A DNA stretch of 64,000 bases from Anaeramoeba ignava BMAN (Eukaryota; Protista; Anaeramoebae), in NCBI GenBank assembly GCA_028826165.1, contig JAPDFW010000011.1, forward strand, positions 780,101 to 844,100, read 5' to 3'. The notes beneath the pieces were generated by a model. That model was not told the origin of the DNA and made no database searches. It saw only the letters and a list, made by a program, of their open reading frames with translations. Shown here piece after piece: positions 1,180 through 64,000 of the stretch. The number at the start of each line of letters is the position of its first letter. Within the stretch, counting starts at the first letter, position 1. Position numbers and translations under genes: made by a program.

Positions 1180-3257
1180 CTATTTAAGAAATCGGGGTAA
1201 AATTCCTTCTTGATTTTCTGTATCAAAAAATCTCCATTGATTAAAATAAATAGCAAGTGAATAAAAAGAAATTGATTGAAACAAAGAATTAAAATAAACA
1301 AAATAAGTTGCATTAGAAGAAGGGGGAATAATTAAAACCATAAACATTCCAAGAATACCCCCAAAAAAATTGAGATGTTGTGACATAATTGATGCTCCGT
1401 AAGTGTTCTTTAATTTATATGATAAAAGTAATTGTGGAAAGTGACTTAAAACTTGTGAAAGTGGTTTGATCATATTTGTGATCGATTTTGAACTTGGATA
1501 TATTGTTCCTAATGATAATGGAATTATCGGAAAAAGAATCCAAATCAAATATTCTTTTTTGTTTTCGTAAATTGAAAATTGAACCATAAATGTTGAATGT
1601 TGAATCACATTGAAAAGACCATAAAGTACAACAGGATAAGCTTCTATATAATTAATTTAAATATATTGATTTAAATATATTGATTTAAATATATTGATTT
1701 AAATATATTAATTTAAATATATTAATTTAAATATATTGATTTAAATATATGATTTAAATATATATTGATTTAAATATATTGATTTAAATATATTGATTTA
1801 TATATATTGATTTAAATATTGATTTAAATATATTGATTTAAATATATATTGATTTAAATATTAATTTAAATATATTGATTTAAATATTGATTTAAATATA
1901 TTGATTTAAATATATTGATTTAAATATATTAATTTAAATATATTGATTTAAATATATTGATTTAAATATATTGATTTAAATATATATTGATTTAAATATA
2001 TTGATTTAAATATATATTGATTTAAATATATTGATTTAAATATATTGATTTAAATATATTGATTTAAATATATTAATTTAAAAATATTGATTTTAAAATA
2101 TATTGATTTAAATATATTGATTTAAATATATTGATTTAAATATATTGATTTAAATATATTAATTTAAAAATATTGATTTAAATATATTGATTTAAATATA
2201 TTGATTTTAAATATATTGATTTATATATTAATTTAAATATATTGATTTAAATATATTTTGATTTAAATATATTGATTTAAATATATTAATTTAAAATATA
2301 TTGATTTAAATATATTAATTTAAATATTTTGATTTAAATATATTGATTTATATATTAATTTAAATATTGATTTAAATATATTGATTTAAATATATTGATT
2401 TAAATATAAATATTGATTTAAATATTGATTTAAATATATTGATTTAAATATATTGATTTAAATATATTGATTTAAATATATTGATTTAAATATATTGATT
2501 TAAATATATTTTGATTTAAATATTAATTTAAATATATTGATTTAAATATAAATATTGATTTAAATATAAATATTGATTTTAAATATATTTTGATTTAAAT
2601 ATATTGATTTAAATATATTGATTTAAATATTAATTTAAATATATTGATTTAAATATATTGATTTAAATATATTAATTTAAATATATTGATTTAAATATAT
2701 TGATTTAAATATATTGATTTAAATATATTGATTTAAATATATTGATTTAAATATATTGATTTAAATATATTGATTTAAGTATATTAATTTAAATATATTT
2801 TGATTTAAATATATTAATTTAAATATATTGATTTAAATATATTGATTTAAATATATTTTGATTTAAATATATTGATTTAAATATATTGATTTAAATATAT
2901 TTGATTTAAATATATTGATTTAAATATATTTGATTTAAATATATTGATTTAAATATATTTGATTTAAATATTTGATTTAAATATATTGATTTAAATATAT
3001 TGATTTAAATATATTAATTTAAATATATTGATTTAAAATATAATTTTACCTTCATTTAAAAAAGAATTTATTAAAAGAAAACTTGAACCAATTAATTTTA
3101 TAATAATCCCAGTTGTACTAAATCCTTTTACTGATTTATTTTTATAATTTAAAAAAGTTTGAGGTAAATATTGGAAAGCAAATAAAATACTTGCTATAAG
3201 TCCGGAAAAACAAGCAAGTCCTTCTAAAGAAAATTCAAATTTTGAACAAGAACCCAT
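1180..3257 (-). CDS. PQ-loop repeat membrane protein (PQLC/cystinosin-like transporter); exons 3257-3050, 1643-1180
   Basis: Two PQ motifs: AFQYLPQTFLNYKNKSVKGFS and LSHFPQLLLSYKLKNTYGAS. GT at 3049 and AG at 1645-1644 join in frame (NE-E-AYPVVLYGLFNVIQH). Confidence 0.85.
1646..3035. repeat. Intronic minisatellite, ~14-bp unit ATATATTGATTTAA (variant ATATATTAATTTAA)
   Basis: About 100 near-perfect tandem copies fill the whole PQ-loop intron. Confidence 0.95.
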
Positions 3258-3482
3258 TTTTATTATTTATTATTTATTATTTAAATAAAAAATGAAAAAA
3301 AAAAATGAAAAAAAAAATGAAAAAATAAATTCAAATTTAATTTTTTTAATCAAATTTTTGAATAATCAAAGAATTTATTGATTTCAAAAAACAAAAAAAA
3401 ATACCAAAAAGAAAAAATACCAAAATCCAAAATCCAAAATCCAAAATCAAAAAAATCAAAAAAATCAAAAAAATCAAAAAAA

Positions 3483-6011
3483 TCACTTTTTGAAAACTGT
3501 CATAAAAGCTGTATATGATTTTTCCAAATCAAAAGTAAGTTGACGAGCTTGATCTTCATCTAATTCTTCATGAGCTCTCATTTGATCTAAAATCTGTTCC
3601 CATTTTGAAATGAGAATTTTTCCTTGAAAATCTTTATCTAAATCTGAAATCTTATTCAAACTTGTAAGTATATCTTTTAATAATGGTTGAACCTGATCAA
3701 CTGCGAGCATATTCAGTTTCAGTCTTATTTTATAATTTATTTTATAATTTATTTTTAAATCCATTTTTAAATTCATTTTTAAATCCATTTTTAAATTTAT
3801 TTTATAATTTATAAATTTATTTTTAAATTTATTTTTAGATTTATTTTTAAATTTGTTTTTAAATTTATTTTATAATTTATTTTTAAATCTATTTTTAAAT
3901 CCATTTTTAAATTTATTTATAAATTTATTTTTAAATTTATTTTTAAATCTATTTTTAAATTTATTTTATAATTTATTTTTAAATTTATTTTTAATTTATT
4001 TTTAAATTTATTTATAAATTTATTTTAAAATTTATTTTTAAATTTATTTTTAAATTTATTTTTAAATTTATTTTATAATTTATTTTATAATTTATTTTTA
4101 AATTTATTTATAAATTTATTTATAAATTTGTTTTATAATTTATTTTTAAATTTATTTTCAGTCTTATTTTATAATTTATTTTTAAATTTATTTTTAAATT
4201 TATTTTTAAATTTATTTTTAAATTTATTTTTAAATTCATTTTATAATTTATTTTTAAATTTATTTTTAAATTCATTTTATAATTTATTTTTAAATCTATT
4301 TACCCATCCATTGCTGTAATAAAACTAGATACTGCTTCTGCAATAAAAATTCGATCATCTTCTTGTCGATTTAAGTTTTTGAGTCGAAGAGTTATTGGTG
4401 TTCCTGTCTCAATTAAAGTTTGATAAGCATGTGGAAAATTTGACTATTTTTTCAATTTTAATTTTAATTTTAATTTTGATTTTAATTTTAATATTAATTT
4501 TGATTTTGATTTTGATATTGAAATTGAAATTGATTTTGATTTTGAAATTGAAATTGAAATTGATTTTGAAATTGAAATTGAAATTGATATTAATTTTGAT
4601 ATTGATATTGATATTAATTTTAATTTTGATTTAAATATTGATTTTAATTTTGATTTTAATATTAATTTTGAAATTGAAATTGATTTTGATATTGAAATTG
4701 AAATTGATTTTGAAATTGAAATTGATTTTGATATTGAAATTGAAATTGATATTGAAATTGAAATTGAAATTGAAATTGATTTTGAAATTGAAATTGATAT
4801 TGAAATTGAAATTGAAATTGATATTGAAATTGATTTTGATTTTGATTTTGATTTTGAAATTGAAATTGAAATTGAAATTGAAATTGATTTTGAAATTGAA
4901 ATTGATTTTGAAATTGAAATTGAAATTGATATTAATTTTGATATTGATATTGATATTAATTTTGAAATTGATATTGAAATTGAAATTGAAATTGATTTTG
5001 AAATTGAAATTGAAATTGATTTTGAAATTGAAATTGAAATTGATTTTGAAATTGATATTGATTTTGATATTGATTTTGATATTGATTTTGAAATTGATAT
5101 TGAAATTGAAATTGATTTTGATTTTGAAATTGATATTGATATTGATATTGATATTGATTTTGATTTTGATATTGATATTGATTTTTAATTTTGAAATTGA
5201 AATTGAAATTGAAATTGATTTTGATTTTGATATTAAAATTAATTTAAATTTGAAATTGATTTTTAATTTTGAAATTGATTTTTAATTTTGAAATTGATTT
5301 TTAATTTTGATATTGATTTTGAATTTAAATTTTAATTTGAAATTTTACTTTTGAGCTGCTTTTTATTTCTTCGAATTCTGGAGAATTATCTATACCCTTT
5401 ATTGCAGTTTGATATTGCATAATCAAGTCATTACAAGCTTTTGTATACTGCTGAGCCTGTATAACGCCCTTTGAATAAGAATTTTCAAGATGTTCAGTAC
5501 TCATCAAAATAGAGAAAAGATTAGCAAGATCATCGAATTTCTCTCTTTCTTTCAAATCCTTATAGCGCTTGATCTTATGATTTTTATTTTTCGGGACATC
5601 CTCTCTCGGAATGCCGTCGATTCTTCGGGGCTTAGCAATCTGCTGCGGGTTCTGGACATTCGGATTAAATTGTTGCATCCCAGTTTGTCCATATTGCACT
5701 TGCTGTTGCTGTCCATACTGGGTTTGCATTGGGTTCTGTGGATACATCGGGTTGAATCGTGGTTGTCCATACCCCATCCCCTGTTGGTTTATATTCCCAC
5801 TATACATGTTCCCACTCATAGGTCGCGTATTTGTTGTTACTCTTCCGCTCATGTTATTGTATCCACTCATTGTGTTATATCCGCTTTGAACCCCTATTTG
5901 ATTTGTCGGTTGCATCGCTACTTTCGGTTGATTTCTTCCGTAACTTGTATTGGTTCGTGGATATGTATTTTTTGATTGCGGTTTGGGTCGCGGTTGTTGT
6001 GGATATTGCAT
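3483..6011 (-). CDS. VPS28: ESCRT-I subunit Vps28 with N-terminal low-complexity extension; exons 6011-5349, 4443-4304, 3723-3483 (~347 aa)
   Basis: EREKFDDLANLFSILMSTEHLENSY..YTKACNDLIMQY, then IAEAVSSFITAMDG|LKLNMLAVDQVQPLLKDILTSL..DEDQARQLTFDLEKSYTAF. Both introns are GT-AG and frame-consistent. Confidence 0.93.
3726..4300. repeat. Intronic 12-bp repeat TTTATTTTTAAA / TTTATTTTATAA (VPS28 intron 2)
   Basis: Tandem copies visible directly. Confidence 0.9.
4446..5345. repeat. Intronic hexamer repeat (TTGAAA/TTGATA/TTGATT)n (VPS28 intron 1)
   Basis: Tandem hexamers. They produce the spurious ILKLKL ORFs in the track. Confidence 0.92.
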
Positions 6012-6100
6012 AAAATAAAATATAAATGAAAAAAAAAAAAGAAAAAGGAAAAAAAAATTGAAAAAAAAATGAAAAATGAAAAATGAAAAATTAAAAATCT

Positions 6101-6217
6101 TTTTGTTTTTGTTTTTGTTTTTGTTTTTGTTTTTGTTTTTGTTTTTGTTTTTGTTTTTGTTTTTGTTTTTGTTTTTGTTTTTGTTTTTGTTTTTGTTTTT
6201 GTTTTTGTTTTGTTTTT
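6101..6217. repeat. (TTTTTG)n microsatellite upstream of VPS28
   Basis: About 18 perfect hexamer copies. Confidence 0.95.
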
Positions 6218-6414: not shown

Positions 6415-9018
6415 TTAAAGGATTAAACAACAACCTCCACTTTTTGTTTCTGTATTTGCTTGAGGAGCTGAATTCTGTCCAGTAGTTTTTGGTGAAGATT
6501 TTGCTTTTCTTAATTCACGAACTAAGGCTTCAAAACAAATGTTAACATTACTTCCAGTTTTTGCAGATCTTTTTTATTAATTTTAATTTTAATTTTAATT
6601 ATTATTTTAATTTTAATTATAATTTTAATTTCATTTCATGTTAATTTTATTTAATTTTAATTTCATTTAATTTCATTTAATTTTAATTTCATTTCATGTT
6701 AATTTTAATTTATTTCATTTCATGTTAATTTTAATTTTAATTTCATGTTAATTATAATTTTAAATTCATTTTAATTTCATGTTAATTATAATTTTAATTT
6801 CATTTCATGTTAATTTTAATTTTAATTTTAATTTTAATTTTAATTTCATTTAATTTTAATTTTAATTTTAATTATAATTTTAAATTCATTTTAATTTTAA
6901 TGTTAATTTTATTTCATTTCATGTTAATTATAATTTTAATTTCATTTCATGTTAATTATAATTTTAAATTCATTTTAATTTCATGTTAATTATAATTTTA
7001 ATTACGTTTCATAATAAGGACTTGAATATTTTTTTGCAAGAGTTTCTCCTTCTTCAGTTGAAACTAATCTTTCTTCTGCAAGATCTATAATCAAAATACA
7101 AAAAAATTAAACATTACGAATTAAAAAATAAAAATGTTTTGATTTATTTTTTAAAAACCTGATTTATTTGCAACTGTAACAACTGGTACATTCATAAAGT
7201 TCTTTGCTCTTCTGATTGCTTCATGAAGACCTCTTGCTTCAGTATAACTAGCTCTTGAAATGATGCTAAATACAAGAATAAAGCCTTCTCCTAATCGAAT
7301 GTACTAATTTTGATTTCAATTTCATTTTTATTTTTAATTTGAATTTTGATTTTAATTTTATTTTTAATTTCATTTTGATTTCATGTGAAAATAAAAAAAC
7401 ACAAAAAAAACTTTACTTTATCTCGAACTGATCGATACTCTTCTTGACCAGCTGTATCAATAATTTCTAAAGTTGCTGGTTTTTCATCAATAATAACAAC
7501 TTTTTTATAACTTTCCTCTAATAAAAATTAAATATTTATAAAATAAAATGAAAAAACAAACAAAATGAATATAAGATAAAAAAAGAAGAAAAATATCTTT
7601 AAATAATTATTTGTTAATTTTTCATTATTTACCAATTGTTGGATCATAATCTTCAATAAATTTTCCTTGAAGGAAACGAACAGTGATACAAGATTTGCCA
7701 ACTAAATTATAAATAAAATTAATAAATAAAATTAATAAATAAAATTATAAATAAAATTATAAATAAAATTATAAATTAAATTATAAATAAAATTATAAAT
7801 AAAATTATAAATAAAATTATAAATAAAATAATAAATAAAATTATAAATAAAATTATAAATTAAATTATAAATTAAATTATAAATAAAATTATAAATAAAA
7901 TTATAAATTAAAAATTAAATTATAAATTAAATTAAATTATATAAATAAAATTATAAATAAAAATTATAACAAATATAAATAAAATTATAAATTAAAATTA
8001 TAAATAAAATTATAAATTAAAATTATAAATAAAATTATAAATAAAATTATAAATTTAAATTAAAATAAAATTATAAATAAAATTATAAATTAAATTATAA
8101 AATAAATAAATAAATTATAAATAAAATTATAAATAAAATTATAAATAAAATTATAAATTAAATTATAAATTAAATTATAAATAAAATTATTATAAATTAA
8201 AATATAAAATTAAATTATAAATAAAATTATAAATAAAATTATAAATAAAATTATAAATTAAATTATAAATAAAATTATAAATTAAAAATAAATTAAATTA
8301 TAAATTAAAATTATAAATTAAATTATAAATTAAATTATAAATTAAATTATAAATTAAATTATAAATTAAAATTATAAAATAAAATTAAAATAAATTATAA
8401 ATAAATAAAAATTATAAATTAAATTATAAATTAAATTATAAATAATAAAATTATAAATTAAATTATAAATTAAAATTATAAATTAAATTATAAATAAAAA
8501 TTATAAATTAAATTATAAATAAAATTATAAATTAAATTATAAATAAAATTATAAATAAAATTATAAATAAAATTATAAATTAAATTATAAATTAAATTAT
8601 AAATAAAATTAAATTTGATTATAAATTAAATTATAAATTAAAATATAAATAAAATTATAAATTAAATTATAAATTAAATTATAAATTAAATTATAAATTA
8701 AATTATAAATAAAATTATAAATAAAATTATAAATTAAATTATAAATAAAATTATAAATAAAATTATAAATAAAATTATAAATTAAATTATAAATTAAATT
8801 ATAAATAAAATTATAAATAAAATTATAAATTAAATTATAAATAAAATTATAAATTAAATTATAAATAAAATTATAAATAAAATTATAAATTAAATTATAA
8901 ATAAAATTATAAATTAAATTATAAATTAAATTATAAATAGAATTTTTGCAATTTGGTGATTATTTTTACCTGATCCTCCTCCAATAATTACAACTTTATG
9001 AACTTCTTCATCTTCCAT
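6415..9018 (-). CDS. Ras-family small GTPase, 198 aa; exons 9018-8970, 7701-7633, 7517-7417, 7303-7159, 7084-7006, 6568-6415
   Basis: Spliced product: [78 protein letters not shown]. G1-G5 boxes, Ras effector loop YDPTIE and CaaX box are all present. Five GT-AG introns, total 597 nt. Confidence 0.93.
6575..7003. repeat. Intronic repeat (TTTTAA / TTTCATGTTAA units) in Ras intron 5
   Basis: Tandem degenerate copies visible. Confidence 0.8.
7704..8938. repeat. Intronic ~11-bp minisatellite AAATTATAAAT(A/T) in Ras intron 1
   Basis: More than 100 tandem copies, almost purely A/T. Confidence 0.95.
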
Positions 9019-9411: not shown

Positions 9412-12238
9412 ATGAGTGATAAAGAAACTTTTGAAAATATTGAAGAATCGGAATTACCAAATATTTTTGATTTAGTTAAAGCACCAGAACCTGATATAAA
9501 TCTTATTTTAAAAGTAGCAGGATCTGGAGTTGATTTGAATATAAGTGAAGAAGATGTAATTTTATAAATAGAATTATAAATTAAAATTATAAATTAAATT
9601 ATAAATTAAATTATAAATTAAATTATAAATTAAATTATAAATTAAATTATAAATAAAATTATAAATTAAATTATAAATAAAATTATAAATAAAATTATAA
9701 ATTAAATTATAAATAAAATTATAAATTAAAATTATAAATTAAATTATAAATTAAATTATAAAATAAAATTATAAATTAAATTATAAATAAAATTATAAAT
9801 TAAATTATAAATAAAATTAAATAAAATTATAAATAAAATTATAAATAAAATTATAAATAATTAAAATTATAAATTAAATTATAAATTAAATTAAAATATA
9901 TAAAAAAAATATAAATTAAATTATAAATATATAAAATTATAAATTAAATTATAAATAAAATTATAAATTAAATTATAAATTAAAATTATAAATAAAAAAA
10001 ATTAATAAATTAAATTATAAATAAAATTATAAATTAAAATTATAAATTAAAATTATAAATTAAATTATAAATAAAATTATAAATAAATTATAAAATATAA
10101 ATAAAAATAAATAAAAAATTAAAAAATTATAAATTTAAATTATAAATTAAATTATAAATTAAATTATAAATTAAAATTATAAATAAAATTATAAATAAAA
10201 TTATAAATTAAATTATAAATAAAATTATAAATAAAATTATAAATAAAATTATAAATAAAATTATAAATAAAATTATAAATTAAAAATTATAAATTAAAAT
10301 TATAAATAAATTATAAATAAAATTATAATTAAATTATAAATAAAATAAATAAAATTATAAATAAAAATTAATAAAATAAAATAAAATTATAAATAAAATT
10401 ATAAATAAAATTATAAATTAAATTAAATAAAATTATAAATAAAATTATAAATTAAATTATAAATTAAATTATAAATTAAATTATAAAATAATTATATAAA
10501 TTATAAATAAAATTATAAATTAAATTATAAATTATAAAATTAAATTATAAATTAAATTATAAATTAAATTATAAATTAAATTATAAATTAAATTATAAAT
10601 TAAAATTATAAATTAAAATTATAAATTAAAATTATAAAATAAATTATAAAATTAAATTATAAATAAAATTATAAATTAAAATTATAAATAAATTATAAAT
10701 AAAATTATAAATTAAATTATAAATAAAATTATAAATAAAATTATAAAAAAAAAATATAAAATTATAAATAAATTATAAATAAAATTATAAATAAAATTAT
10801 AAATTAAATTATAAATAAAATTATAAATAAAATTATAAATTAAATTATAAATTAAATTATAAATAAAATTATAAATAAAATTATAAATTAAATTATAAAT
10901 TAAATTATAAATAAAATTATAAATAAAATTATAAATAAAATTATAAATTTCTAAATAAATTAAATTATAAATTTCTAAATAAATAAAATTATAAATTTCT
11001 AAATAAATAAAATTATAAATTTCTAAATAAATAAAATTATAAATTTCTAAAATAAATAAAATTATAAATTTCTAAATAAATTAAAATAGACGGGAATGAC
11101 ACCACTCCATTTTGCTTGTGCAAATAACAACGAAGATTTAGTTAAAATCTTAATTCTTCACAACGCCAAAGTACACATCACAAATAAGCAAGGATTTTTT
11201 CCAATAGATATTGCATATCAAAACAAAAATCTGGCGATAGCAAAGCAACTTCTTCAAGAGAAAAACCAGGAAGAAATTGAGCGATTAGGACTGAAAGTTA
11301 ACGATATGAGAGGAGTAGATTTTTCAGCTCGAAATTTCGAACCAGAATTATTACATTATATATCATATTTTATAGCAATTAATATAAAACAAATCATCGA
11401 AAATAATTCGGTAAATTTTGGAGAGATTTGGAACGAAAACCAAATCGACGTTCTCACAGAATGCATCTATAGAAGTTTGGATGAGAACAACTCGGTGATA
11501 GTTCTTAATAAATTCAAGTCACTTCCTAAATTTAAACGTCTTATGTTTGCGGCACTTTATTTTATAATCAAAAAATTTCATACTCTTCCTGATTTTGAAA
11601 AGTATAATATTTTGCATGAAAAACAAGATCCCAGAACTTGGGAAGATATTCTAATCAACGTGAATGAAATGATGCAACTTGTTAATGTTGATAATTGTAT
11701 TCAAATTCTTGGCACTTTTTGTCAAGCAAGATTGAAAATGATTGCAAAATATAAAAAATTTGTTACTGAATCTTTTAATCCTTTTTTTTTAAGGTTTATG
11801 GAAAAGATTAATAAGCTTTGTCGTAATAATTTTGATTTTTTACCAAAAGGAAAAGATGTTGTTATTGCACGTTCTTTAACACACAAAGTAAAAAATTGAA
11901 AAAATTTAGATTAAAAAATTCAATTCAAAAAATTCAATTTAAAAAATTTAAAAAAAATTTATAAATAGAATGTTATTAGTGTTTGGAGCTTCGCAAGAAA
12001 ATATAAACAACATTTTATTGAAGAACAATGCTTTCGTTTTCTTAAAGATTCAGATTTTTCCGAAATTGAAAAAAAAATTTTTAGTGAAAAATTCATTATC
12101 ATTTCAGAATCAGATATTGTCATTTCAATCCAAATGCGTGATTTAACTGTACTTAAATTTGAAGAACAAAAAAATAAAGAAAATCTTGATGAAGAACTTG
12201 CTCAAATAAATACACAACTTCAAATTTCTCAAAAATAA
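9412..12238 (+). CDS. Ankyrin-repeat protein with C-terminal BACK-like helical repeats; exons 9412-9555, 11090-11887, 11969-12238
   Basis: GVDLNISEED|TGMTPLHFACANNNEDLVKILILHNA..GFFPIDIA is ankyrin. VNVDNCIQIL and LTHK|NVISVWSFARKYKQHFIEEQCFRFL resemble BTB/BACK helices. Phase-0 GT-AG introns. Confidence 0.75.
9572..11085. repeat. Intronic ~11-bp minisatellite AAATTATAAAT(A/T), with five AAATTATAAATTTCTAAAT units at the 3' end
   Basis: Tandem copies of the same unit as 7704-8938. Confidence 0.95.
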
Positions 12239-15254: not shown

Positions 15255-18085
15255 ATGTCATTTGGATGGAAAGTTACACAAGTATTTGGGGATAATTCAT
15301 CACCAGGACCAGTTAATGATTGTGATATTATTTCTGCACTTGAATTTGACACTACTGGCGAATATATTGCAGTTGGAGATAGAGGAGGACGTGTAGTTCT
15401 TTTCCAAAGAGAATCTCCACCAAAATATACTGATGTATTATTGAATAATTCAATAACAAAAAATTATATTTAAATGGGATTAAAAAGTAATTGAATTTTT
15501 TTTTTTTAATTTTTTTAATTTTTTTTTTTGTTTAGGAAATTGAAACTAATAATTCCCGTTTAAGAGGTTTTAAATTTTATAATGAATTTCAAAGTCATGA
15601 ATCTGAATTTGATTATTTAAAAAGCAATGAAATTGAAGAGAAAATTAATTCAATTAAATGGTTAAAACCAAGAAATAATGCAAATTTTTTACTTTCTACA
15701 AATGGTAATTTTTTAAATGAATTTTGATTTTAATTTTATAAATGAATTTTGATTTTGATTTTAATTTTAATATTAATTTTAATTTTGATTTTAATTTTAA
15801 TTTTAAATTTAATATTAATTTTAATTTTAATTTTATAAATGAATTTTGATTTTGATTTTAATTTTAATATTAATTTTAATTTTAATTTTATAAATGAATT
15901 TTAAATTTAATTTTAATTTTAATTTTAATTTTATAAATGAATTTTAATTTTAATTTTAATTTTAATTTTAATTTTAATTTTAATTTTAATTTTAATTTTA
16001 ATTTTAATTTTAATTTTAATTTTAATTTTAATTTTAATTTTAATTTTAATTTTAATTTTAATTTTAATTTTGAATTTTAATTTTAATTTTATTTAGATAA
16101 AACAATTAAACTTTGGAAAATTTATGAAAAGGATACTTTTATTGATAATGAATCTGCATTAAATTTTCAAGAAATTTCATCTCCATCATTTCTTAGAATT
16201 CCAAAAATTTCAAAACAAAAACCAACACCTTCAATTCATTTAAGAAGAGTATATTCACATGCCCATGTTTATGATATTAATTCTATTTCTGTTAATCCTG
16301 ATCAAGAAACTTTTTTGTCTTCTGATGGTCTTCGAATTAATCTTTGGAATCTTGAACTTACAAAAAATGCATTTAGTAAAATTTAATTTCATTTCAATAT
16401 TTAATTTCATTTTAATATTTAATTTCATTTTAATATTTAATTTCATTTTAATATTTAATTTCAATATTTAATTTCATTTCAATATTTAATTTAATTTCAA
16501 TATTTAATTTCAAAATTTAATTTCATTTCAATATTTAATTTCATTTTAATATTTAATTTCAATTTAATATTTAATTTCATTTCAATATTTAATTTCATTT
16601 CAATATTTAATTTCATTTTAATATTTAATTTCATTTTAATATTTAATTTCATTTCAATATTTAATTTCAATATTTTAATATTTAATTTCATTTCAATATT
16701 TAATTTAATTTTAATAATTTAATTTAATTTTAATTTTAAAAAAATTTAATTTTTCATTTTTAATATTTATTTTTTAATATTTAATTTTAATATTTAATTT
16801 CATTTTAATATTTAATTTCAATATTTAATATTTCATTTCATTTCAATATTTAATTTCATTTTAATATTTAATTTAATTCAATATTTAATTTAATTTTAAT
16901 ATTTAAATTAATTTTAAAATTTCTTAGATATTGTTGATATGAAGCCTGAAGATTTAGAAGATTTAACAGAAGTTATTACAGATGCTAAATTTCATCCTAA
17001 TAATTGTGGTTTGTTTTGTTATTCAACTTCTAAAGGAGTTATTAGATTAGGAGATTTAAGAGTATCAAAAACTTCCACTGATTCATCGAAAAGTATTTAA
17101 AAATTAAAATTAAAATTAAAATTAAAAATTAAAATTAAAATAAAAATTAAAATTAAAATTAGTTTTCCATTATGAAGACAATGAAAGTAATTCTTTCTTT
17201 TCAGAAGTTATCAATAGCATATCAGATATTCAATTCTCATTTGACGGGCGTTATGTTGTTTCTCGAGATTTTATGTCTTTAAAAGTAAAATTAGAGAAAA
17301 TAATATTATATTTTTTCAATTAATTTATTTTTTTCTTTAGGTTTGGGATTTGAATATGGAATCAAAACCTGTTGCTATTTTTCATGTTCATGAATTTTTA
17401 ACACCAAAATTTGGATATCTTTATGAAAATGATTATATTATTGATAAATTTGAATGTTCATTTTCACATGATGGAGAGTAAAATATTCAAGTTTTAAAAT
17501 TAAAATTAAAATTAAAATTAAAATTAAAATTAAAATTAAAATCAAAATTCATTTATAAAATTAAAATTATAATTAAAATTCATTTTGAAATTAAAATCAA
17601 AAATTAAAATTAAAATTAAAATTATAATTAAAATTAAAATAAAATTAAAATTAAAATTAAAATTAAAATTAAAATTAAAATTAAAATTAAAATTAAAATT
17701 AAAATTAAAATTAAAATTTAAAATTAAAATTAAAATTAAAATTAAAATTAAAATTCATTTATAAAATTAAAATTATAATTGTTGATATAAAATTATCAGA
17801 CATTTAATAACTGGTTCTTATGGAAATCACTTTTATATCATTGATTGGAAACGAGAAAAAGCAATACTTGTAAATGCTTCACAAAATCCACATTTGAATC
17901 AACAATATTTTGATGCAATTACACCAACAAATAAAAATTCACCAACAACAAGCGCATTAGAATATAACATTCAAAAGGTTGATTATTCAAGAAAAGTTTT
18001 AGCAGTTGGTTGGAATCCGAAAGAACCTATAATTACTTTCGGTGCAACAAACATTTTATACTTGTATGCGGGAAAACCTCTTTAA
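15255..18085 (+). CDS. PPP2R2: PP2A regulatory subunit B (B55/PR55/Cdc55), WD40; exons 15255-15434, 15536-15704, 16097-16375, 16928-17092, 17163-17284, 17341-17477, 17800-18085
   Basis: [29 protein letters not shown]; [22 protein letters not shown]; [11 protein letters not shown]; [41 protein letters not shown]; [13 protein letters not shown]. Confidence 0.95.
15705..16096. repeat. (TTTTAA)n-filled intron 2 of B55
   Basis: Long perfect TTTTAA run, with embedded AATTTTATAAATGAATT copies. Confidence 0.9.
16380..16920. repeat. ~21-bp repeat TTTAATTTCATTT(T/C)AATA in B55 intron 3
   Basis: Tandem copies. They produce the spurious MKLNIE ORFs. Confidence 0.88.
17495..17780. repeat. (AAAATT)n-filled intron 6 of B55
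   Basis: Tandem hexamers, the reverse complement of the intron 2 repeat. Confidence 0.9.
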
Positions 18086-20009: not shown

Positions 20010-20057
20010 TTTGAATTAAAAAAAAATGAAAAAAAAAATGAAAAATATTTTTTCCGA

Positions 20058-41833: not shown

Positions 41834-41870
<37 letters not shown>

Positions 41871-41972: not shown

Positions 41973-42003
<31 letters not shown>

Positions 42004-42458
42004 TATTTATTTATTGATTTATTTATTGATTTATTGATTTATTGATTTATTTATTTATTGATTGATTTGATTGATTGATTGATTGATTTATTTATTTATT
42101 TATTTTGATTTATTTGATTTATTTTTATTTATTTGATTTATTTATTTTTATTTATTTATTTATTGATTTATTGATTTATTGATTGATTTATTGATTGATT
42201 TATTTATTTATTTATTGATTTATTGATTTATTGATCGATTTATTTATTTATTTATTAATTGATTTATTTATTTATTTATTGATTGATTTATTTATTAATT
42301 TATTGATTTATTTATTTATTTATTGATTTATTTATTTATTGATTTATTGATTTATTTATTTATTGATTTATTTATTTATTAATTTATTTATTTATTGATT
42401 GATTTATTTATTTATTTGATTTATTTATTGATTTATTGATTAATTTATTTATTGATTT

Positions 42459-42489
<31 letters not shown>

Positions 42490-47700: not shown

Positions 47701-50700
47701 TTTGAACACGAGAAGAACGAATGCCATTCCATTGATACAATTTGCGGTTGATTTTTTGGTTGGATTGCTGAGATTTAATATCGGCAACAAAAACACAATC
47801 ATGGCGCAAAGAAGACGGAGAAAAATCGACTTGTTCAACACGAAGAGCAGGAGTGATGCGGATCAAAATGTTTGTGAGCAAGCTCTGAGAAGATGATTCG
47901 CTGCGGACAATTTCCTTCATCATTTTATCCTTATATTGAAGAACAGGGAGAATTGTGTGTGTTGTGTCTCCCGGTTTTATTGAATCCCACGGTATTCCAT
48001 TGATATATTCATCCAAATATGTGTTTGCTAATTGAGATGATCCTCTTCTAAATACTCTTGGCGATAATCGCGTGTTGGGTTTTGTTTTAACAGAAAATTT
48101 TCGTGGAGAGAATTGTTCTGATTTTTGTTGTTGTCCTCCCACTTCTATTTCTTCAACTTTATTTCCTATTGGTGAAAAAGGATCTATTGTTAATGTGTTT
48201 TCTGTAACAAAACGCAAGCGAGGATTCTGTCCGATTGTGTTCCGAGTTGTGTTTGGATCGTTTATGATTTTTGAAGGATTGACTAGAGTTGATTTTGCGC
48301 GAAATTTGTCTTCTGATATTTGATTTTGATTTTGATTTTGATTTTGATTTTTGATTTTGATTTTTATTTTCATTTTCATTTTCATTTTCATTTTCATTTT
48401 CATTTTCATTTTGAATTTGAATTTGATTTTGATTTTGAATTTGATTTTCATTTTCATTTTTATCTAAATTTTGATTTTGATTTAAATTTTGAATTTGATT
48501 TAAATTTTGATTTTGATTTTGATTTAAATTTAAATTTTGATTTTGATTTTGATTTTCGTTTTTTTGAACATCATCAATAAATGAATTATCATCTTTTTTA
48601 TCATAAATATTTGAGTTTTCATCAATATCATCCTCGGATTCATTAGAAGAATCCTCATCGCGACTACAAAGTAGCAAAAATCTCATGAGTTCAACACCAC
48701 GGATCCAAACCTCCATTTCATTGAGATCCTTAGCAAATAAAACCCAACTTTTGGATGAACCATGGAAATTAATTTGGAAACAACAAATACACTCTTCATG
48801 ACGATTAGGGTCTTGGAAACCGCCTCCAAATGTGCGGAGGATTCTGACTGGATGAACAGAAACAACATCAGCAAGTGATTCTGATTCTTCCGAAGATTTT
48901 GAGTCCTTATCAGAAAGACAAAGAATGCGACCTCCGCGGATCGCAAAATAACGTCTGTCCCATAATTCCTTGCTATTTTGAACTTTTCGCCGAAGGAGAA
49001 AACCCTCGGGTTGAGAGATAATCCGCACACGCTTTTGCGAAGAATGGAATCTCTCCGAATTAATACTTGCAAAATCTTTGTTGTCATGAAAACTCTTGAT
49101 CAATGCTTGAGCCCATTTGATATTGTCAATAAGAGATTCTTTCTGCGCTGAATCGGCGCAGCATATGATGAACCGCTGTTTGAGATGCGATATTTCTAGA
49201 CAATTTTGGATGAGAAGCTCAGTATCATCATCCAAAACACGAAGAACTTGAGTTTCATCATTGATTGATTTTCGTTTTTTTCTAGGAAATAAATACGCGT
49301 AATTGCGAACAGGGATTTGTGGTTTTTCTTGTGTATTTGATTGCTTATAAAATTGTAGAACGGATTTGGATGATTTGTCACTGCGCGGAAATGCCTTGAA
49401 TTTGTCATGCCGAAGAAGATTGGGTCTCACTGTAAATTGTGATATTTGCCACGAATAAAGTGGATCTTGAAGTCTGTTGTTTGCCTCCCAAATACTCATG
49501 AAGGGAAGCTTCAAAACAGACACAACAGGCTTGAAGTCGTTGATCCGTTTTTCCATAAATAAGTATATCTTCGCAGTGTGTGCGAATGCCATAACTGTTC
49601 GGTGAAAACGCAATGCGGGATCGTCCCCACCTTCCTCCCTTCGGAATGAGATTATATCTTTTTCGGGTACAATTCCATACGATGCAAACACAACAAGATC
49701 ATTCATCCGTTTTCCCGTCGCAAATCTTGATGAAGGCTCAATGAATAGTGAGTGAGTCACTAAGTCTCTTTCGTCGCATAATCTTTTTTTGAAAAGCGTG
49801 TGTTTGACATCTCGTACTTTTTGATCCGGTGAAACATGAATAGATTTGACTAAATTTTTCTCCGGAATTTGGATTCGGACCACAAAATCTCTTTCTTGAG
49901 CACCACATTGCAGTGTTTCATAACGATCCATAAGCTCAAGTAAATCGTTTTGTTTGATTTGATAAAAACAAAGTGATTCTGAATCTCGCAAAACAATCGG
50001 CGATCTTTTTTCCGTTTCTGCGCCTGGGAGCACAAGTCGGTACTCGGTAACTTCGCTCTCTTCAAGTATAGGAACAAGTTTTTTGGCCAGAAGACGCTTT
50101 GTCTCCTTCACAGTTGTTTCTGGTGTTACTATCACTGTTTTTGTTGTTTGAAGTGATGGTATAAGCACAAAAAGAAAATATTGTGTATCAAGTGTGCTTT
50201 GATCTGTTTTGCAAAAGTAATTTGCTCGGTTGTAAAAAGACATTGCACGAACAGAGCTTGATGATCGATTAAGTACTTTTAAGGAGAATTCATCTTGCTC
50301 GTTATTTTCTTTTGGATTTTGATTTAAATTTTCTTTTGAATTTTGATTTAAATTTTCTTTTGAATTTTCTTTTGAATTTTCTTTTAAATTTTCTTTTGAA
50401 TTTTCTTTTGAATTTTCATTTAAATTTTCTTTTAAATTTTCATTTGAAGTTTTTTCTAAATTTTCATTTAAATTTTCATTTAAATTTTGATTTAAATTTT
50501 CTTTTGAATTTTGATTTAAATTTTCATTTAAAGTTTTTTCTAAATTTTCATTTGAATTTTCTTTTAAATTTTCATTTGAATTTTCTTTTGAATTTTCTTT
50601 TAAATTTTCTTTTAAATTTTCTTTTAAATTTTCATTTGAATTTTCATTTGAATTTTCATCAAAAGTATCAAAACGATCATCAGTTTCTTTTTTATTCATT

Positions 50701-51698
50701 GTCTCAATTTTCAATGAACCCAATTTTTCGATATACTCTTCGAAATTATTGACATGGATATTACCTTCTTTTCTAGGATTAGAAAGATTAGAAGGATTTA
50801 AATTAGATAAAACTGGGGATCTATAATCCCAAGAAAGTTTCATTCTGAGCTCATTTGGGTCAAGTGCATCTGATTCAACAAAGTGTTGGATCACTTCTCC
50901 CGAAAGTAGAATAGAAGATCTTTGGGTAAGTTTTGGGATTTTTGTCTTATTCATTAAATCCATTGCAGCTTTTATTTGTTGCATCCACTTGTCTCTGTTG
51001 TCATCATTAACGGCATGCAAAAAATTTGAGTCTTGAGGACTATGAATAGCAAAAGCATGTGACATTCCATTTATTTTTTGGTTTAACACTTCTGCTAGTT
51101 CAATTTTATTTGCATGCGATTCGAAAATTTTTTCCTTTAACGTCTTGTCAGAAAATCCTATCAAAACTCCTGTATGTGTAAGTATGAAAAAACCTGTCAC
51201 CCATTTTCCATTTGTATCTTCTTGTCGAATAAGAAGAGAAAGTGTTCCATATATTCTGACGTTATTGATAAAGTCAGTGTTTACTTTTTGTGTCGTTTGT
51301 TTTCTTTGAACGTCGTTTGTTTGTGTTTTTTCAATTTCATTTGTACTTGTTTCTTTTTTTTCATGCGACAGATTTTTAAAAGAAATTTGTTGAATGTGTT
51401 GAATCCATTTTTCTTGAACATTGGCAGTTTTTGCTTCAAATAATAAAATATTTCTATCATCCACAATTCTAAATACAAATCCTTCCCTGTCAAGTTTGAC
51501 TTCTTCAATTTCTTCTACATTTGTTAATGCTATTGTTTTTTTTGATACTGTCGATAGTGCATCTTTAAATATGAAAATAAAACCATCTTTCATTTCAACC
51601 CATCTTTTTTTAAATACTGTGTTTTCTTTTTTTAAGTCTTTTATTAAAAACCATGCAAAAAGTGGTGTTTGTCTTTTTAATTTTAAATAAAGCTCCAT
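44798..51698 (-). CDS. ~2300-aa intronless multidomain protein: PH-PH, two ubiquitin-like domains, PH domain(s), gelsolin/villin repeats, villin headpiece; one apparent frameshift at ~48350
   Basis: PH signatures (FKKRWVEM..QEKWIQHI; NRDKWMQQI; WDRRYFAI..EMEVWIRGV). Ubl-like segments (TKTVIVTPETTVKETK; VSPDQKVRDVKH). Gelsolin motifs (SLRHDCVFVAD..LYQWNG; LDTTCCFVID..VFVWIG; LNSGYCFVL..YLWIG; EGNEPLDFW). Headpiece LEKYLTENEFYSLFHLKKSEFEDLEKTKQEKLKKRLYLM. The two ORFs overlap in an NQ tract with one extra base and no GT donor. Confidence 0.82.
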
Positions 51699-52108: not shown

Positions 52109-55100
52109 CTAAAATAAATGTAAACGAGGTTCTCTTGGTGGAATTAACCAAATTTGAGCATCTTTCGAAAGAAAATTTTCTTGATTTAATTTTAAGAAAA
52201 AATTTGTTTCTTTATTATTTGGTACGGATAATGTTGTTGATTTTAAAATGAGACGATCCATATCCCAAAATCCTTTAACAGATGTATCATCAGAAAAAGA
52301 TAAAATTCCTTTATTATGAATCTAATTTAAGAAAGAAATTTAATTTTATATTTTATATTTTATATTTTATATTGAATATTTTATATTGAATATTATATAT
52401 TGAATATTTTATATTGAATATTTTATATTGAATATTTAATATTTTATAATATTTTATATTGAATATTTTATATATTGAATATTTTATTTTATATTGAATA
52501 TTTTATATATTTTATATTGAATATTTTATATATTGAATATTTTATATATTTAATATTTTATATTTAATTTTATATATTGGATATTTTATATTTAATATTT
52601 TATATTGAATATTTAATATTTTATAATATTTTATATTGAATATTTTATATATTGAATATTTTATTTTTATATTGAATATTTTATATATTTAATTTTATAT
52701 TTAATATTTTATATTTAATATTTTATATTTAATATTTTATATTTATATTTTATATTGAATATTTTATATTGAATATTTTATATATTTTATATATTTTATA
52801 TTTTTATATTGAATATTTATATATTTTATATTTTATATTGAATATTTTATAATATTTTATATTGAATATTTTATATTGAATATTTTATATTTTATATTTA
52901 ATATTTTATATTGAATATTTATATATTTTATAATATTTTATATTTGAATATTTTTATATATTGAATATTTTATATTTAATATTTTATATATTTAATATTT
53001 TATATTGAATATTTTATATTGAATATTTTATATTTAATATTTTATATTGAATATTATATATTTAATATTTTATATTTTATATTTTATATTGAATATTATT
53101 TTTATTTTAAATTTTTTATTGAATATTATATATATTTTTATATTGAATATTTTATATATTTTTATATTGAATATTTTATATATTTTATATTGAATATTTT
53201 ATAATATTTTATATTGAATATTTTATAATATTTTATATTGAATATTTTTATATTGAATATTTTTATAATATTTTATATTGAATATTTTATATTTAATTTT
53301 ATAATAATTTATATTTTTAATATTTTATATTTTAATATTTTATATTGAATATTTAATTTTATATTTATATTGAATATTTTATATTTAATATTTTATATAT
53401 TTTATATTGAATATTTTTATATTTAATATTTTATATATTTTTATATTGAATATTTTATATTGAATATTTTATTTTATAATATTTTTATATATTTAATTAT
53501 ATATTTAATATTTTATATATTTAATTATATATTGAATATTTTATATATTTAATTATATTTTGAATATTTTATATTGAATATTTAATTTTAGAATATTTTA
53601 TATTGAATATTTAATTTTATAATATTTTATATTGAATATTTTATATATTTAATATTGAATATTTTATATTGAATATTTTATATATTTAATATTTTATATT
53701 GAATATTTTATACGTTTCCATAACTCATTTCTCCAGTATATTGAACATTTTCTGAATTATGATAATGTATTTCTTTTCCCATTGAAATTCCGTCTTTAAA
53801 TATTCCTGTAAATTGTTCTAAAATATCTTCAGGTTCAATATTTTGTTTAATAGATGATAAATTTTTAGATTTTAAAATATATAAAGTTCCATATCCATTT
53901 GGGAGATTATATGACCTAAATTTTAATTTTAATTTTAATTTTAATTTTAATTTTTAATTTTAATTTTAATTTTAATTTTTAATTTTAATTTTTAATTTTT
54001 AATTTTTAATTTTTATTTTTAATAACAAACCATTCTCCAGTATATTTAATATTTTTATTAATAAAAATTCCTCTTCCAGAACGCATTCCATTTTTCCATT
54101 CACCTTCATATTTTTTATCTTCTGAATATTCCATTAATCCTTGTCCATTTTGAAGATCATTTTTCCAAGATCCTTTATATTTCCAATATTTAGTAATAAA
54201 AGTACCAGTTCCTTGTTTCTAAGCATTGAATATTAAAATTATTATAAAATTATTATTAAAATTATTATTATAATTATTATTAAATTTATTATTAAAATTA
54301 TTATTAAAATTATTAATAAATTTAATATTAAATTTATTATTAAAATTATTAAATTTATTATTAAAATTATTATTAAATTTATTATTAAATTTATTATTAA
54401 AATTATTATTAAAATTATTATCAAAATTATTATCAAAATTATTATCAAAATTATTATCAAAATTATTATTAAATTATTATTAAAATTATTATTAAAATTA
54501 TTAAATTTATTATTAAATTTATTATTAAAATTATTATTAAAATTATTATTAAAATTAATATTAAAATTAATATTAAAATTATTATTAAAATTATTATTAA
54601 AATTATTATTAAAATTATTATTAAATTTATTATTAAATTTATTATTAAATTATTATTAAATTATTATTAAAATTATTATCAAAATTATTATTAAAATTAT
54701 TATTAAAATTTATTATTAAAATTATTATCAAATTTATTATTAAAATTATTAAATTTATTATTAAAATTATTATTAAAATTATTATTAAAATTATTATTAA
54801 AATTGTTATTGAAAATTATTATTGAAAATTATTAAAAACATACTTGATCTCGAACCCAAGAACCTTCATAACTATCACCAGTTACATAAATTTGTTTTCC
54901 ATGACCTTCTCTCCTATCATTCCTCCATGAACCTTTATAAAAATTACCTAAAGAATCCTTAAATTCACCAATACCAGAACGCATATTATCTTTAAAACTT
55001 CCTGAATAAAAATCACCATTTGCAAACTTCAAAGTACCTTTCCCTTCAAAAAGATCATTAAGAAACTCTCCCTCATAAATAGAGCCATCAGAAGAAACAA

Positions 55101-60600: not shown

Positions 60601-62543
60601 AATAATTTTTTATAAATAATTTTATAAAATAATTTTTTTATAATTAATTTTATAAATAATTTTTATAATTTAATTTTATAATTAATTTTATAATTAATTT
60701 TATAAATAATTTTATAAATAATTTTATAAATAATTTTATAATTAATTTTATATAATTAATTTTATAAATAATTTTATAAATAATTTTATAAATAAATTTT
60801 TATTTTATAATTAATTTTATAATTATTTTTATAAATTTTTATAATTAATTTTATAAATAATTTTATAAATAATTTTATAATTAATTTTTATAAATAATTT
60901 TTATAAATAATTTTATAATTAATTTTATAAATAATTTAATTTTATAAATAATAATTTTATAATTAATTTTATAAAATGAATTTTATAAAATAATTTTTTA
61001 TAAATAATTTTATAAATAATTTTTATAAATAATTTTTAAATAATTTTATAAATAATTTTATATTTAATTTATATATTTAATTTTATAATTAATTTTTATA
61101 TTTAATTTTATAAATAAATTTTATAAATAATTTTATAAATAATTTTATAAATAATTTTATAAATAATTTTATAAATAATTTTATATTTAATTTTTATAAA
61201 TTAATTTTATAATTAATTTTTATAATTAATTTTATATATAATTTTATAAATAATTTTATAAATAATTTTATAAAATAAATTTATAAATAATTTTATATAT
61301 AATTTTATAATTAATTTTATAAATAATTTTATAAATAATTTTATAAATAATTTTATAAATAATTTTATAATTAATTTTATAAATAATTTTATAATTAATT
61401 TTATAAATAATTTTATAAATAATTTTATAATTAATTTTATAATTAATTTTATAAATAATTTTATAAATAATTTTATAAATAATTTTTAAATAATTTTAAT
61501 TTTAAAATTAATTTTATATTTAATTTTATATTTAATTTTATAAATGAATTTTATAAATAATTTAATAATTAATTTTATATATAATTTTATAAATAATTTT
61601 ATATTTATTTTTATAATTAATTTTTATATTTAATTTTATAAATGTATTTTTATATTTAATTTTATAATTAATTTTATAAATAATTTTTATATTTTTTAAT
61701 TTTATATTTAATTTTTATATATGAATTTTATATTTAATTTTTATAAATAATTTTATATTTAATTTTATAAATAATTTTATAATTAATTTTATAATTAATT
61801 TTATATTTAATTTTATAATTAATTTTATATTTAATTTTATAATTAATTTTATAATTAATTTTATAATTAATTTTATATATAATTTTATAATTAATTTTAT
61901 AATTAATTTTATAAATAATTTTATAATTAATTTTATAATTAATTTTATAATTAATTTTATAAATAATTTTATAAATAATTTTATAATTTTATAAATTTTT
62001 ATAATTAATTTTAAATTAATTTTTAATTTGAATCCTCACTTGCTCATTATCAAATGATTGATTTTGATTAAGCGTATTTGAAAGATGATTAATTATCATT
62101 GGATCTAAATTTGAAGAAATAATTTCATTCCATTCATTTTGAGATTTTTGTGACAAACGATTTTTGACTAAATTTGTTGTTTCTTTTTTAACATCTTGAT
62201 TAACAGAAAAAATCAAATCAAGATGTAAAAAATTCAAATATTCTTCAAAAGTAAAAGAAGAATTAGTTTCATTTCTTCCATTTTGTGCACTTCTTTGTTG
62301 CAAATATTGCAACTTTCTATTCATCCTTTCTTGATCAAATTCTTCAGGAAGAAGTCCATATGCTTTTGCTTTAATTGCTTTTTGCGTTAATGTTTGTTCC
62401 TCAAAATGTACTCTTTGATTTTTCTTCTCTATTTCAACACTTTGATGATGTGTTTGATTTATAAAACGATCAACAAATGGAACTGTTTGATTTATTCCAA
62501 GATTTAATTTTTCTGCTTGATTTAAAAGATTTCCAAAATCCAT
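57625..62543 (-). CDS. NUP93: Nucleoporin Nup93/Nic96; exons 62543-62040, 60161-59431, 59356-59200, 59116-58091, 58009-57836, 57744-57625
   Basis: MDFGNLLNQAEKL; SRLYLEQQY; PLWPQIYLCLRTG; DPYKQAIYNIL; IEDWIWYK; YFRILILTLQFEYAIAYL..EAIHFAIAL; CLPEVLLTLM. Introns are GT-AG and in frame. Confidence 0.9.
60170..62020. repeat. Intronic 12-bp repeat AATTTTATAA(AT/TT) in NUP93 intron 1
   Basis: About 1.85 kb of tandem copies. Confidence 0.94.
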
Positions 62544-62881
62544 TATAAATTTTCTTTAAAAACCGTTTTTTTTTTATAAATGAAAAAAAAATAAAAAAAT
62601 GAAAAAATGAAAAAATGAATTTAAAAAAAAAATTATTTTTTGTTTTAAAAATGAAAAATGAAAAGAAATTTAAACTTATTTTAAGAATGAATAATTTTTG
62701 GTAATGTATTTGTTTGTTAGACTGATTTCGAAACCAAGTCTTGACACAAAAAAAAAAAAAAGGAAAAAAGGAAAGAAAAGAAAGGAAAAAAAACGGTAAA
62801 AGAAAAAAAAGTCAAAAAAAAAAAGGAGATCAAATTGATTGAAAAAAAAAAAATTTTTTTTTGCGAATTATTTTTTTTTCC

Positions 62882-64000
62882 CTAATTATCCTGATCCATA
62901 TCTTGGTCGTCATCTTGGTCGCCTTTATCATCATGATCTTGATCATTTTGGTCATCAGGAGGATGAATAGGGTCTTGATGATGTTGAGGTTCTGGTTGTT
63001 CCTGTTCATCAGCACCCCAACTGAACAATAAATTTGCGGCCAAAGCCTCATTTCTGTCGCAAGCTAACCAAGCTTGTAAAACAGTTGTTCTATCGAAACC
63101 CAAGCCAACAAGTCTTTCAATCTGTTCTTTTTCTTCTTGGGTTACTTGGATAGTATGTTGTCTTTGAGGTCCTTGATTTGGATCTTGATCATCGCCTCCA
63201 AATTGTGGACCATCATCTCCATCGTCAGAAAGTAATTGTATAAATTCTTGTGGATGTTGTGCAATATATTGTACTAAATCTGGGTTTGTTTGACTTAATT
63301 GTGCTAATACTGTTTGGAGTAATGCTGGATTTTCTCGAATTCTTCGTTTGAATTCTTGGAATTGTGGAAGTGATCTTAATGTTTGTAAAGGATTTGTTGT
63401 ATCGTCTTCGTCTCCTCCACCAAAGAGATTAACACCACCACCATCTATTAATTAAAATTATTTATAAATTTAAAATTAAAATTATTTATAAATTTAAAAT
63501 TAAATTTAAAATTATTTATAAAATTAAAATTAAAATTATTTATAAATTTAAAATTAAAATTATTTATAAATTTAAAATTAAAATTTTTATAAATTTAAAA
63601 TTAGAATTATTTATAAATTTAAAATTAAAATTATTTATAAATTTAAAATTATTTATAAATTAAAATTAAAATTATTTATAAATTTAAAATTAAAATTAAA
63701 ATTATTTATAAATTTAAAATTATAATTATTTATAAATTTAAAATTATTTATAAATTTAAAATTATAATTATTTATAAAATTAAAATTATTTATAAATTTA
63801 AAATTATTTATAAATTTAAAATTAAAATTATTTATAAAATTAAAATTAAAAATTATTTTATAAAATTAAAATTATTTATAAATTTTAAAATTATTTTATA
63901 AATTTAAAAATTAAAATTATTTATAAATTTAAAAATTAAAATTATTTATAAAATTATTTATAAATTTAAAAATAAAAATTTTACGTGTGTGCTGGATTTA
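62882..64000 (-). CDS. RAD23: RAD23 ubiquitin shuttle, 3' part; last exon 63444-62882, previous exon >64000-63985
   Basis: XPC-binding domain PLQTLRSLPQFQEFKRRIRENPALLQTVLAQLSQTNPDL..HPQEFIQLL, followed by UBA2 IQVTQEEKEQIERLVGLGFDRTTVLQAWLACDRNEALAANLLF. Confidence 0.93.
63450..63980. repeat. Intronic repeat AAAATTATTTATAAATTT(AAAATT) in RAD23
   Basis: Tandem copies fill intron 63445-63984. Confidence 0.92.

Follow-up and report, generated by a model that had tools for sequence, protein, structure and literature searches.

Intron size evolution is commonly credited to transposons or to slow indel drift. A 64-kb stretch of DNA from the protist Anaeramoeba ignava BMAN (hereafter the window, the whole stretch that was analysed) raises the question of what else can lengthen introns, as short AT-rich tandem repeats occupy almost all of its long introns. 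The window is the terminal part of an 844,100-bp scaffold (C2, positions 780101-844100), and the genome comprises 42,843,398 bases in 147 contigs. The published assembly has an N50 of 512,274 bp (Table S1) and an A+T content of 80.65% overall and 91.86% in introns; its annotation, which relied on RNA-seq mapping, includes 32,108 introns with a mean of 300 nucleotides (nt), a median of 102, a mode of 76 and a maximum of 4,168 nt, together 22.5% of the genome (PMC11550330). Tandem repeats in introns are mentioned neither in the main text of the genome paper nor in its supplements (PMC11550330), and repeat-driven intron growth is absent from its account. Our analysis shows that the long introns of the window are built of tandem arrays, and indicates that they were very probably inflated in place by the expansion of AT-rich micro- and minisatellites.

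Tandem arrays occupy the long introns

Non-redundant tandem arrays detected with Tandem Repeats Finder (TRF) make up 33.5-34% of the window. At a TRF score of at least 400 the coverage is 29.6%, compared with 0.8-5.5% in shuffles that preserved dinucleotides inside 500-nt blocks, and the real arrays have periods of 6-28 nt while the shuffles give spurious long periods only. Short units arranged head to tail, as slippage-type micro- and minisatellites are, thus occur far above chance. The arrays are imperfect (69-98% matches) and carry variants specific to their locus. TRF recovered, at the same coordinates, every array that an earlier inspection of the letters alone (the sequence-only reading) had listed. 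The claim of that reading that long introns are array-filled also stands: arrays account for 70% or more of the length in 22 of the 24 introns that reach 150 nt, and for 92.7% of the 31 mapped introns pooled. The array usually begins 0-17 nt past the GT motif and stops 0-20 nt before the AG. Scans of the window for Rfam families and tRNAs returned no match, so intron-hosted RNA genes do not account for the long introns.

Among low-GC stretches of at least 400 nt, arrays fill 70% or more of the sequence in 18 of 19 intronic and in 2 of 7 intergenic cases (Fisher p = 0.0018, which is indicative only, as paralogous introns are not independent). Both intergenic array stretches (33732-35672 and ~20015-20635) sit immediately 5' of a start codon and may belong to introns of the 5' untranslated region; it would be an overstatement to call the arrays solely intronic.

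All 26 mapped introns have GT..AG ends, with GTAA, GTAT or GTGA as the 5' motif. The intron ends proposed in the sequence-only reading (1644-3049, 3724-4303, 4444-5348, 7702-8969, 9556-11089, 16376-16927 and 52322-53713, and the single ends 37759, 41818, 54219, 60162 and 63984) were exact, all falling on GT..AG, and its placement of exons agrees with Pfam and PDB colinearity and with three public A. ignava protein models. Exons were searched singly, not as joined models, against Pfam and PDB. Splice signals abut the array; at 1644-3049, for example, the exon end GAAG is followed by GTAAAATT, 98 copies of the 14-mer and ATATAG, after which the next exon opens with AAGC. Removal of the introns restores a continuous conserved protein for VPS28, Ras, PQ-loop and B55 as well as for the public proteins P0001-P0003. 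The VPS28 Pfam profile falls on three exons (positions 1-55, 65-110 and 112-187) with two arrays between them, Ras profile positions 9-33, 34-67 and 68-114 fall on consecutive exons, and a PQ-loop repeat is found by Pfam on either side of the 14-mer array at 1644-3049. Five exons match residues 68-117, 116-213, 213-261, 310-351 and 357-445 of human B55-alpha in PDB, with arrays at three of the joints. Mapped to the window, P0002 (ankyrin) leaves the intron 9556-11089, P0003 (PQ-loop) leaves the intron 1644-3049, and P0001 (MORN/PIP5K-related) has four introns, each of them array-filled. The window introns are therefore predicted to be ordinary U2-type GT-AG spliceosomal introns, and the mapped short introns (63-82 nt) agree with the mode (76) and median (102) of the published annotation. 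The array-filled introns outside the SLC12 genes, and one large array between genes, are as follows.

1644-3049, minus strand: PQ-loop gene intron 1, 1406 nt, 99% filled by ~98 copies of the 14-mer TTAAATCAATATAT (sense; TRF); Pfam hits on both flanking exons, P0003 mapping to 3257-3051 and 1644-1183
3724-4303, minus strand: VPS28 intron 2, 580 nt, 12-mer array between VPS28 profile positions 65-110 and 112-187
4444-5348, minus strand: VPS28 intron 1, 905 nt, hexamer array (TTTCAA/TTAAAA), with profile positions 1-55 upstream and 65-110 downstream
6569-7005, minus strand: last intron of the Ras-like GTPase gene, 437 nt, array of a 28/34-nt unit, interrupting the conserved ETSAK motif between ET and SAK
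7702-8969, minus strand: Ras-like GTPase intron 1, 1268 nt, AAATTATAAAT(A/T) array
9556-11089, plus strand: ankyrin-repeat gene intron 1, 1534 nt, 12-mer family of 7702-8969 in the same DNA orientation
15705-16096, plus strand: PP2A B55 intron, 392 nt, (AATTTT)n, flanked by human B55 residues 68-117 and 116-213
16376-16927, plus strand: PP2A B55 intron, 552 nt, 18-mer array, flanked by B55 residues 116-213 and 213-261
17478-17799, plus strand: PP2A B55 intron, 322 nt, (TTAAAA)n, flanked by B55 residues 310-351 and 357-445
19388-19892, minus strand: PROPPIN intron 1, 505 nt, (AAATTA)n
33732-35672, strand unassigned: array of the 14-mer AATTGAATTATTTT, 1.94 kb, lying between the stop codon of SLC12 c3 and the start codon of c4; intergenic or in an intron of the 5' untranslated region
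52322-53713, minus strand: MORN/PIP5K-related gene intron 4, 1392 nt, 7/14/28-mer array, placed by P0001 exons 53914-53705 and 52321-52112 and splice sites
53916-54030, minus strand: MORN gene intron 3, 115 nt, (AAAATT)n, placed by P0001
54219-54843, minus strand: MORN gene intron 2, 625 nt, 12-mer array, placed by P0001
56671-56927, minus strand: MORN gene intron 1, ~257 nt with approximate boundaries, AAAATT-based array, placed by P0001
60162-62039, minus strand: Nup93/Nic96 gene intron, 1878 nt, 12-mer TTATAAAATTAA (sense)
63445-63984, minus strand: RAD23-like gene intron, 540 nt, array of a 24-mer found at no other locus

The stretch 7704-8969 was also considered as intergenic DNA and this was rejected, as splice-site and exon evidence make the array intron 1 of the Ras-like gene: exon 1 (MEDEEVHKVVIIGGGS) terminates at GTAAAAAT, and the acceptor precedes VGKSC, which is followed by Ras profile positions 9-33. 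In the neighbouring ankyrin gene, P0002 places exon 1 at 9412-9555, followed by exon 2 sequence (from 11090) and exon 3 (11969-12235). These two genes are divergent, and their arrays share 86% of their 12-mers in the same orientation and 0 with the reverse complement. The (AAATTA)n array of PROPPIN runs on upstream of the start codon to ~20635. The upstream exon of Nup93/Nic96 (62019-62543) gave no PDB or Pfam match; it is a putative N-terminal exon, assigned by splice signals and an N-terminal motif.

Arrays grew inside existing introns

Growth in place can be followed in five SLC12 (cation-chloride cotransporter) paralogues that lie head-to-tail at window positions 21040-44662 with 80-95% DNA identity.

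21398-43284, plus strand: five tandem SLC12 paralogues, c1-c5, with three common intron positions
Intron A: c1 268, c2 191, c3 647, c4 1019, c5 790 nt
Intron B: c1 71, c2 82, c3 80, c4 312, c5 804 nt
Intron C: c1 63, c2 217, c3 157, c4 70, c5 71 nt

Intron length at these three positions ranges from 63 to 1019 nt, and the differences come from (AAAATC)n, (TATT)n and (AAATT)n. Intron A holds 0, 10, 82, 155 and 118 copies of AAAATC in c1 to c5. The short copies of intron B (c2/c3) begin with the seed GTATTTATTTATT, and at the same motif c4 has (TATT)~75 and c5 has ~200 copies, with a TATT-to-GATT variant spreading through them. Although the spacers of c2 and c3 show 95% identity, the arrays of these two paralogues are unequal in length by hundreds of bases. 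On either side of 33732-35672, the surrounding spacer is homologous to those of c2 and c3, which have no array. A segmental duplication elsewhere in the genome (L012, C2 670-678 kb; L013, C17 4.5-12.5 kb) likewise has flanks that are 97% identical and 14-mer arrays of 1151 and 734 nt, a difference of 417 nt. SLC12 introns A-C have proto-repeats at unexpanded homologous sites, and copy number varies among homologues both there and in the L012/L013 pair. Because copies as close as c2/c3 and L012/L013 hold unequal arrays, copy number alters faster than point substitutions build up.

The sequence-only reading held that introns lengthened by amplification of a short piece of the ancestral intron. 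The SLC12 series, with seeds in the unexpanded copies, bears out local amplification in existing introns; derivation of the seed from the intron's own ancestral sequence cannot always be demonstrated, since units are often common to unrelated loci. In the same gene cluster, the last exon of c1 is divided between overlapping open reading frames in different frames (22954-23673 and 23624-24091), and c1 may be a pseudogene or contain an assembly frameshift.

Hallmarks of insertion are lacking. As had been noted from the letters, there are no transposon ends or target duplications: in-register junction repeats measure 0-3 nt in all 26 introns. The arrays leave so few bases after the GT motif and before the AG that there is no space for element termini, and the 14-mer family, compared across 13 arrays, has no conserved termini or common flanks except in the L012/L013 duplication. 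Insertion of a transposon or other element is not supported.

The sister species A. flamelloides offers a comparison at the PQ-loop locus. Its orthologue (P0004, 58% identity) spans 4.8 kb and has introns near residues 92-98 and at residue 157, compared with 69/70 in A. ignava. No tandem repeat at a TRF score of at least 80 and no open reading frame above 134 aa was found in the 3.9-kb intron of this gene (L021 4280-8188, JANTQA010000060.1), which has 20-29% GC, i.e., the normal GC of the genome. Because this intron is non-repetitive and of normal GC, the long introns of the sister species differ in kind from those of A. ignava. Two A. flamelloides strains are 97.7% identical across the gene, TRF coverage of their PQ-loop loci is 0-0.7%, and in a third relative (P0005) the gene is intronless. 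Array inflation at this locus is specific to A. ignava; as the A. flamelloides orthologue lacks an intron at 69/70, the comparison gives no support in this case for an ancestral intron.

Repeat units avoid GT and AG

The intronic arrays are depleted of splice-site dinucleotides. Over 15,978 nt the sense strand contains 13 GT and 18 AG where base composition predicts 87 and 71, and the antisense strand contains 56 GT/AG where 518 are expected. Units with G or C are free of GT, AG, AC and CT in 29 of 31 cases (7.0 expected from shuffled units), or in 16 of 18 when the 14-mer family is excluded, and 72% of G/C in arrays stand in a TGA/TCA context, compared with 29.5% in non-array AT-rich DNA. On the sense strand C is 3.3-fold more abundant than G, and four arrays have sense G (e.g., 41819-42609, with 80 G). 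The rule of the arrays is better described as no GT/AG, holding on both strands, than as absence of G on the sense strand.

The 5' splice motif in the window is hardly more than GT followed by A/T, so that a GT or AG in an AT-rich unit would amount to a near-consensus site many times over. Selection against units with splice signals, which we infer, would account for the depletion on the sense strand; for the antisense strand, one possibility is that the same families are used in either orientation. Arrays in long open reading frames were taken as coding, and those of the villin/PH gene (47046-47513 and 50304-50657) have both AG and GT on the sense strand.

Private and recurrent repeat units

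The sequence-only reading regarded the repeat of each intron as private. Of seven units tested this failed for three, which recur genome-wide, and held for the other four, which are private or nearly so. As a dimer, the 14-mer of 1646-3041 has 118 matches in the genome (control 0); its 12-16-nt variants form arrays of 0.6-1.8 kb at at least 12 other loci, and both orientations occur relative to host genes. Two copies of TTAATTTTATAA (array 60181) have 1083 matches and the control 18, and the 24-mer of AAATTATAAAT (arrays 7704 and 9562) has 2179 matches and the control 502. At the other extreme, AATTGAATTATTTT (array 33732) has a single match elsewhere, the 18-mer of array 16377 occurs elsewhere just as 2-mismatch variants, the 28-mer of array 52339 is found at two further loci, and the 24-mer of array 63450 has no other match in the genome. 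There are only a few hundred possible classes of A/T-only 12-mers, and hence their recurrence is expected. The 14-mer contains one C and recurs far above expectation, which suggests either copying between loci or repeated derivation from common precursors. As the AAATTATAAAT family is very common, its presence in both the Ras-like and the ankyrin gene was given no weight as a sign of local copying.

The 12 loci sampled beyond the window total 96 kb and were selected for the presence of one array family; their array content is 28-64% each (TRF). Statements about the whole genome are based on these loci, on pattern counts and on published statistics. That intron inflation is a genome-wide process, as the sequence-only reading suggested, is plausible in view of this chosen set and of published intron lengths that average 300 nt although the median is 102.

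How the introns were inflated

We consider expansion in place to be very probable. A short proto-repeat in an intron of 60-100 nt would reach tens or hundreds of copies of an AT-rich unit of 4-28 nt, presumably through replication slippage or unequal exchange, until the array occupied everything between the 5' motif (GTAAAAT/GTAATT/GTATTT) and the last bases before the AG. Within AT-rich DNA a GT or AG would look like a real splice site, multiplied a hundred times, and only units free of both would survive, with G or C almost confined to TGA/TCA. Several findings weigh against this account. Independent local origin predicts far fewer occurrences of identical 14-mer arrays than the 12 or more unrelated loci observed, the equally strong antisense depletion makes selection for splicing of the sense strand insufficient by itself, and the two large arrays next to start codons lie outside coding-region introns. 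The paralogous SLC12 introns count as non-independent observations, and the loci sampled beyond the window add up to only 96 kb and were picked because they hold one array family. The evidence for splicing comes from protein colinearity and public annotation, and the array lengths are those of the published hybrid assembly.

The rival that deserves most attention is that arrays were seeded by copying from a genome-wide satellite library, through template switching, ectopic repair synthesis or re-insertion of array-derived circles, and then expanded locally. This is quite possible, though we lean against it, and it complements expansion in place more than it excludes it. It would explain why the 14-mer family lies among unrelated flanks in both orientations to host genes, why 12-mer families are 4-60 times commoner than reversed controls, and why one family in one DNA orientation fills adjacent introns of two divergent genes; strand-symmetric GT/AG avoidance also fits units that work in either orientation. 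Recurrence is nonetheless expected among so few A/T-only 12-mer classes, two arrays of a very common family may lie side by side by coincidence, neither a junction nor a chimeric intermediate was observed, and the SLC12 series requires no import. A more far-reaching form of the idea, which we regard as unlikely, is that a library of satellites free of splice signals in both orientations is copied between loci, colonises introns on either strand and then expands, and may even give rise to new introns by filling breaks during repair. If this were true, introns in this lineage would owe their size, and possibly their number, to satellites rather than to transposons.

Array introns could instead be new introns, arising from repeat-bearing DNA inserted in exons (introner-like or break-repair filler). 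Recent intron gain in A. ignava has been argued (PMC10710043), the PQ-loop intron at residue 69/70 is missing in both the A. flamelloides orthologue and the third, intronless relative, and the arrays leave hardly any unique intron sequence. We nevertheless find this improbable, as junction repeats in register are just 0-3 nt in 26 introns, the termini of 14-mer arrays are not conserved, and the SLC12 introns predate their expansion; with an average amino-acid identity of 37% between the two species, intron turnover is expected regardless. That the arrays are kept for a function, such as locus-specific pairing tags, transcription timing or chromatin phasing, is more doubtful still. The strong intron bias and the many locus-specific units would suit it, and a role for barcode-like satellites in meiotic pairing has been put forward in a 2026 preprint; yet copy number is very unlike between near-identical paralogues, units are common to many loci, and no arrays are present at the orthologous locus of A. 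flamelloides. Least credible of all is an artefact of assembling low-complexity AT-rich sequence. Nanopore-based assemblies can misestimate repeat length, but the arrays are imperfect and carry locus-specific variants, paralogous and duplicated loci retain distinct lengths, public protein models splice across arrays, and the published annotation with RNA-seq mapping has introns of up to 4168 nt (PMC11550330).

Comparison with other systems

The arrays resemble intronic micro- and minisatellites shaped by slippage in their head-to-tail units, growth from proto-repeats and fast copy change between homologous loci. In the compact 43-Mb genome of A. ignava, however, almost every long intron consists mainly of the repeat, and arrays make up about one third of the sampled sequence and extend to both splice sites. 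Dictyostelium discoideum shares the extreme AT content and the abundant short repeats, including coding poly-N/Q tracts, and simple repeats reportedly exceed 11% of its bases, but its introns stay short. The array content of the A. ignava samples is about three times the Dictyostelium figure, and is concentrated in introns. Introners and other transposon-generated introns also place related sequence in many introns; the A. ignava arrays differ in having no conserved termini, target-site duplication or common flanks, and in the paralogues they grow inside older introns.

Simple satellite arrays that are transcribed and spliced out are also known from the giant introns of the Y-linked Drosophila genes kl-3 and kl-5, which are megabase-sized, heterochromatic and limited to a few testis genes with a special expression programme (PMC6508621). 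The arrays of A. ignava measure 0.2-1.9 kb and lie in ordinary housekeeping genes, apparently genome-wide; with a largest array intron of 1878 nt, they are not giant introns of the Drosophila type. In Daphnia pulex tandem repeats are densest in introns and their motifs are stranded, as here, but they form a small part of intron sequence (PMC3152781), compared with about 90% of long introns in A. ignava, where GT/AG is avoided on both strands.

A large share of a compact protist genome thus appears to be invested in intronic tandem arrays, and the mean intron is three times as long as the median. A. ignava offers a natural system for studying the pace of intron inflation by satellites, its limits under GT/AG avoidance and the cause of the intron bias, including whether transcription or selection produces it. 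On the practical side, assembling this genome, mapping reads to it and predicting its genes are all made harder by the arrays.

Other features of the window and sampled loci

Arrays also occur in long open reading frames of the window (28067-28304, 32569-32809, 47046-47513 and 50304-50657). In SLC12 c2 and c3, (AATCAA)n would encode poly-Asn-Gln, and the arrays of the villin/PH gene have units of 12-48 nt. The open reading frames 44798-48457 (gelsolin and villin headpiece) and 48159-51698 (PH and FERM_f0) overlap in different frames, and an (AAATCA)n stretch (48314-48556) lies at the overlap. The region 44798-51698 is probably one gene of ~2400 aa with a further array-filled intron near 48316-48619.

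The N-terminal extension of VPS28 (5560-6010) comprises ~150 residues rich in Q/P/N/G/M, with 41-47% GC compared with 19% locally, and (CAAAAA)20 at 6100-6217 (98% matches), ~100 nt upstream of the VPS28 start codon, lies in spacer and not in an intron. At one sampled locus (L017 4877-7430; C62, ~380.9-383.4 kb) a 322-nt unit is repeated 7.9 times, starting in or beside a tRNA-Gln(CTG) gene, and ARAGORN called a single intact tRNA. Another (L010 4993-7119; C1, ~775-777 kb) holds a G-protein alpha subunit gene, recognised by the motifs GPGDSGKST and DVGGQR, which has two more array-filled introns made of other units.

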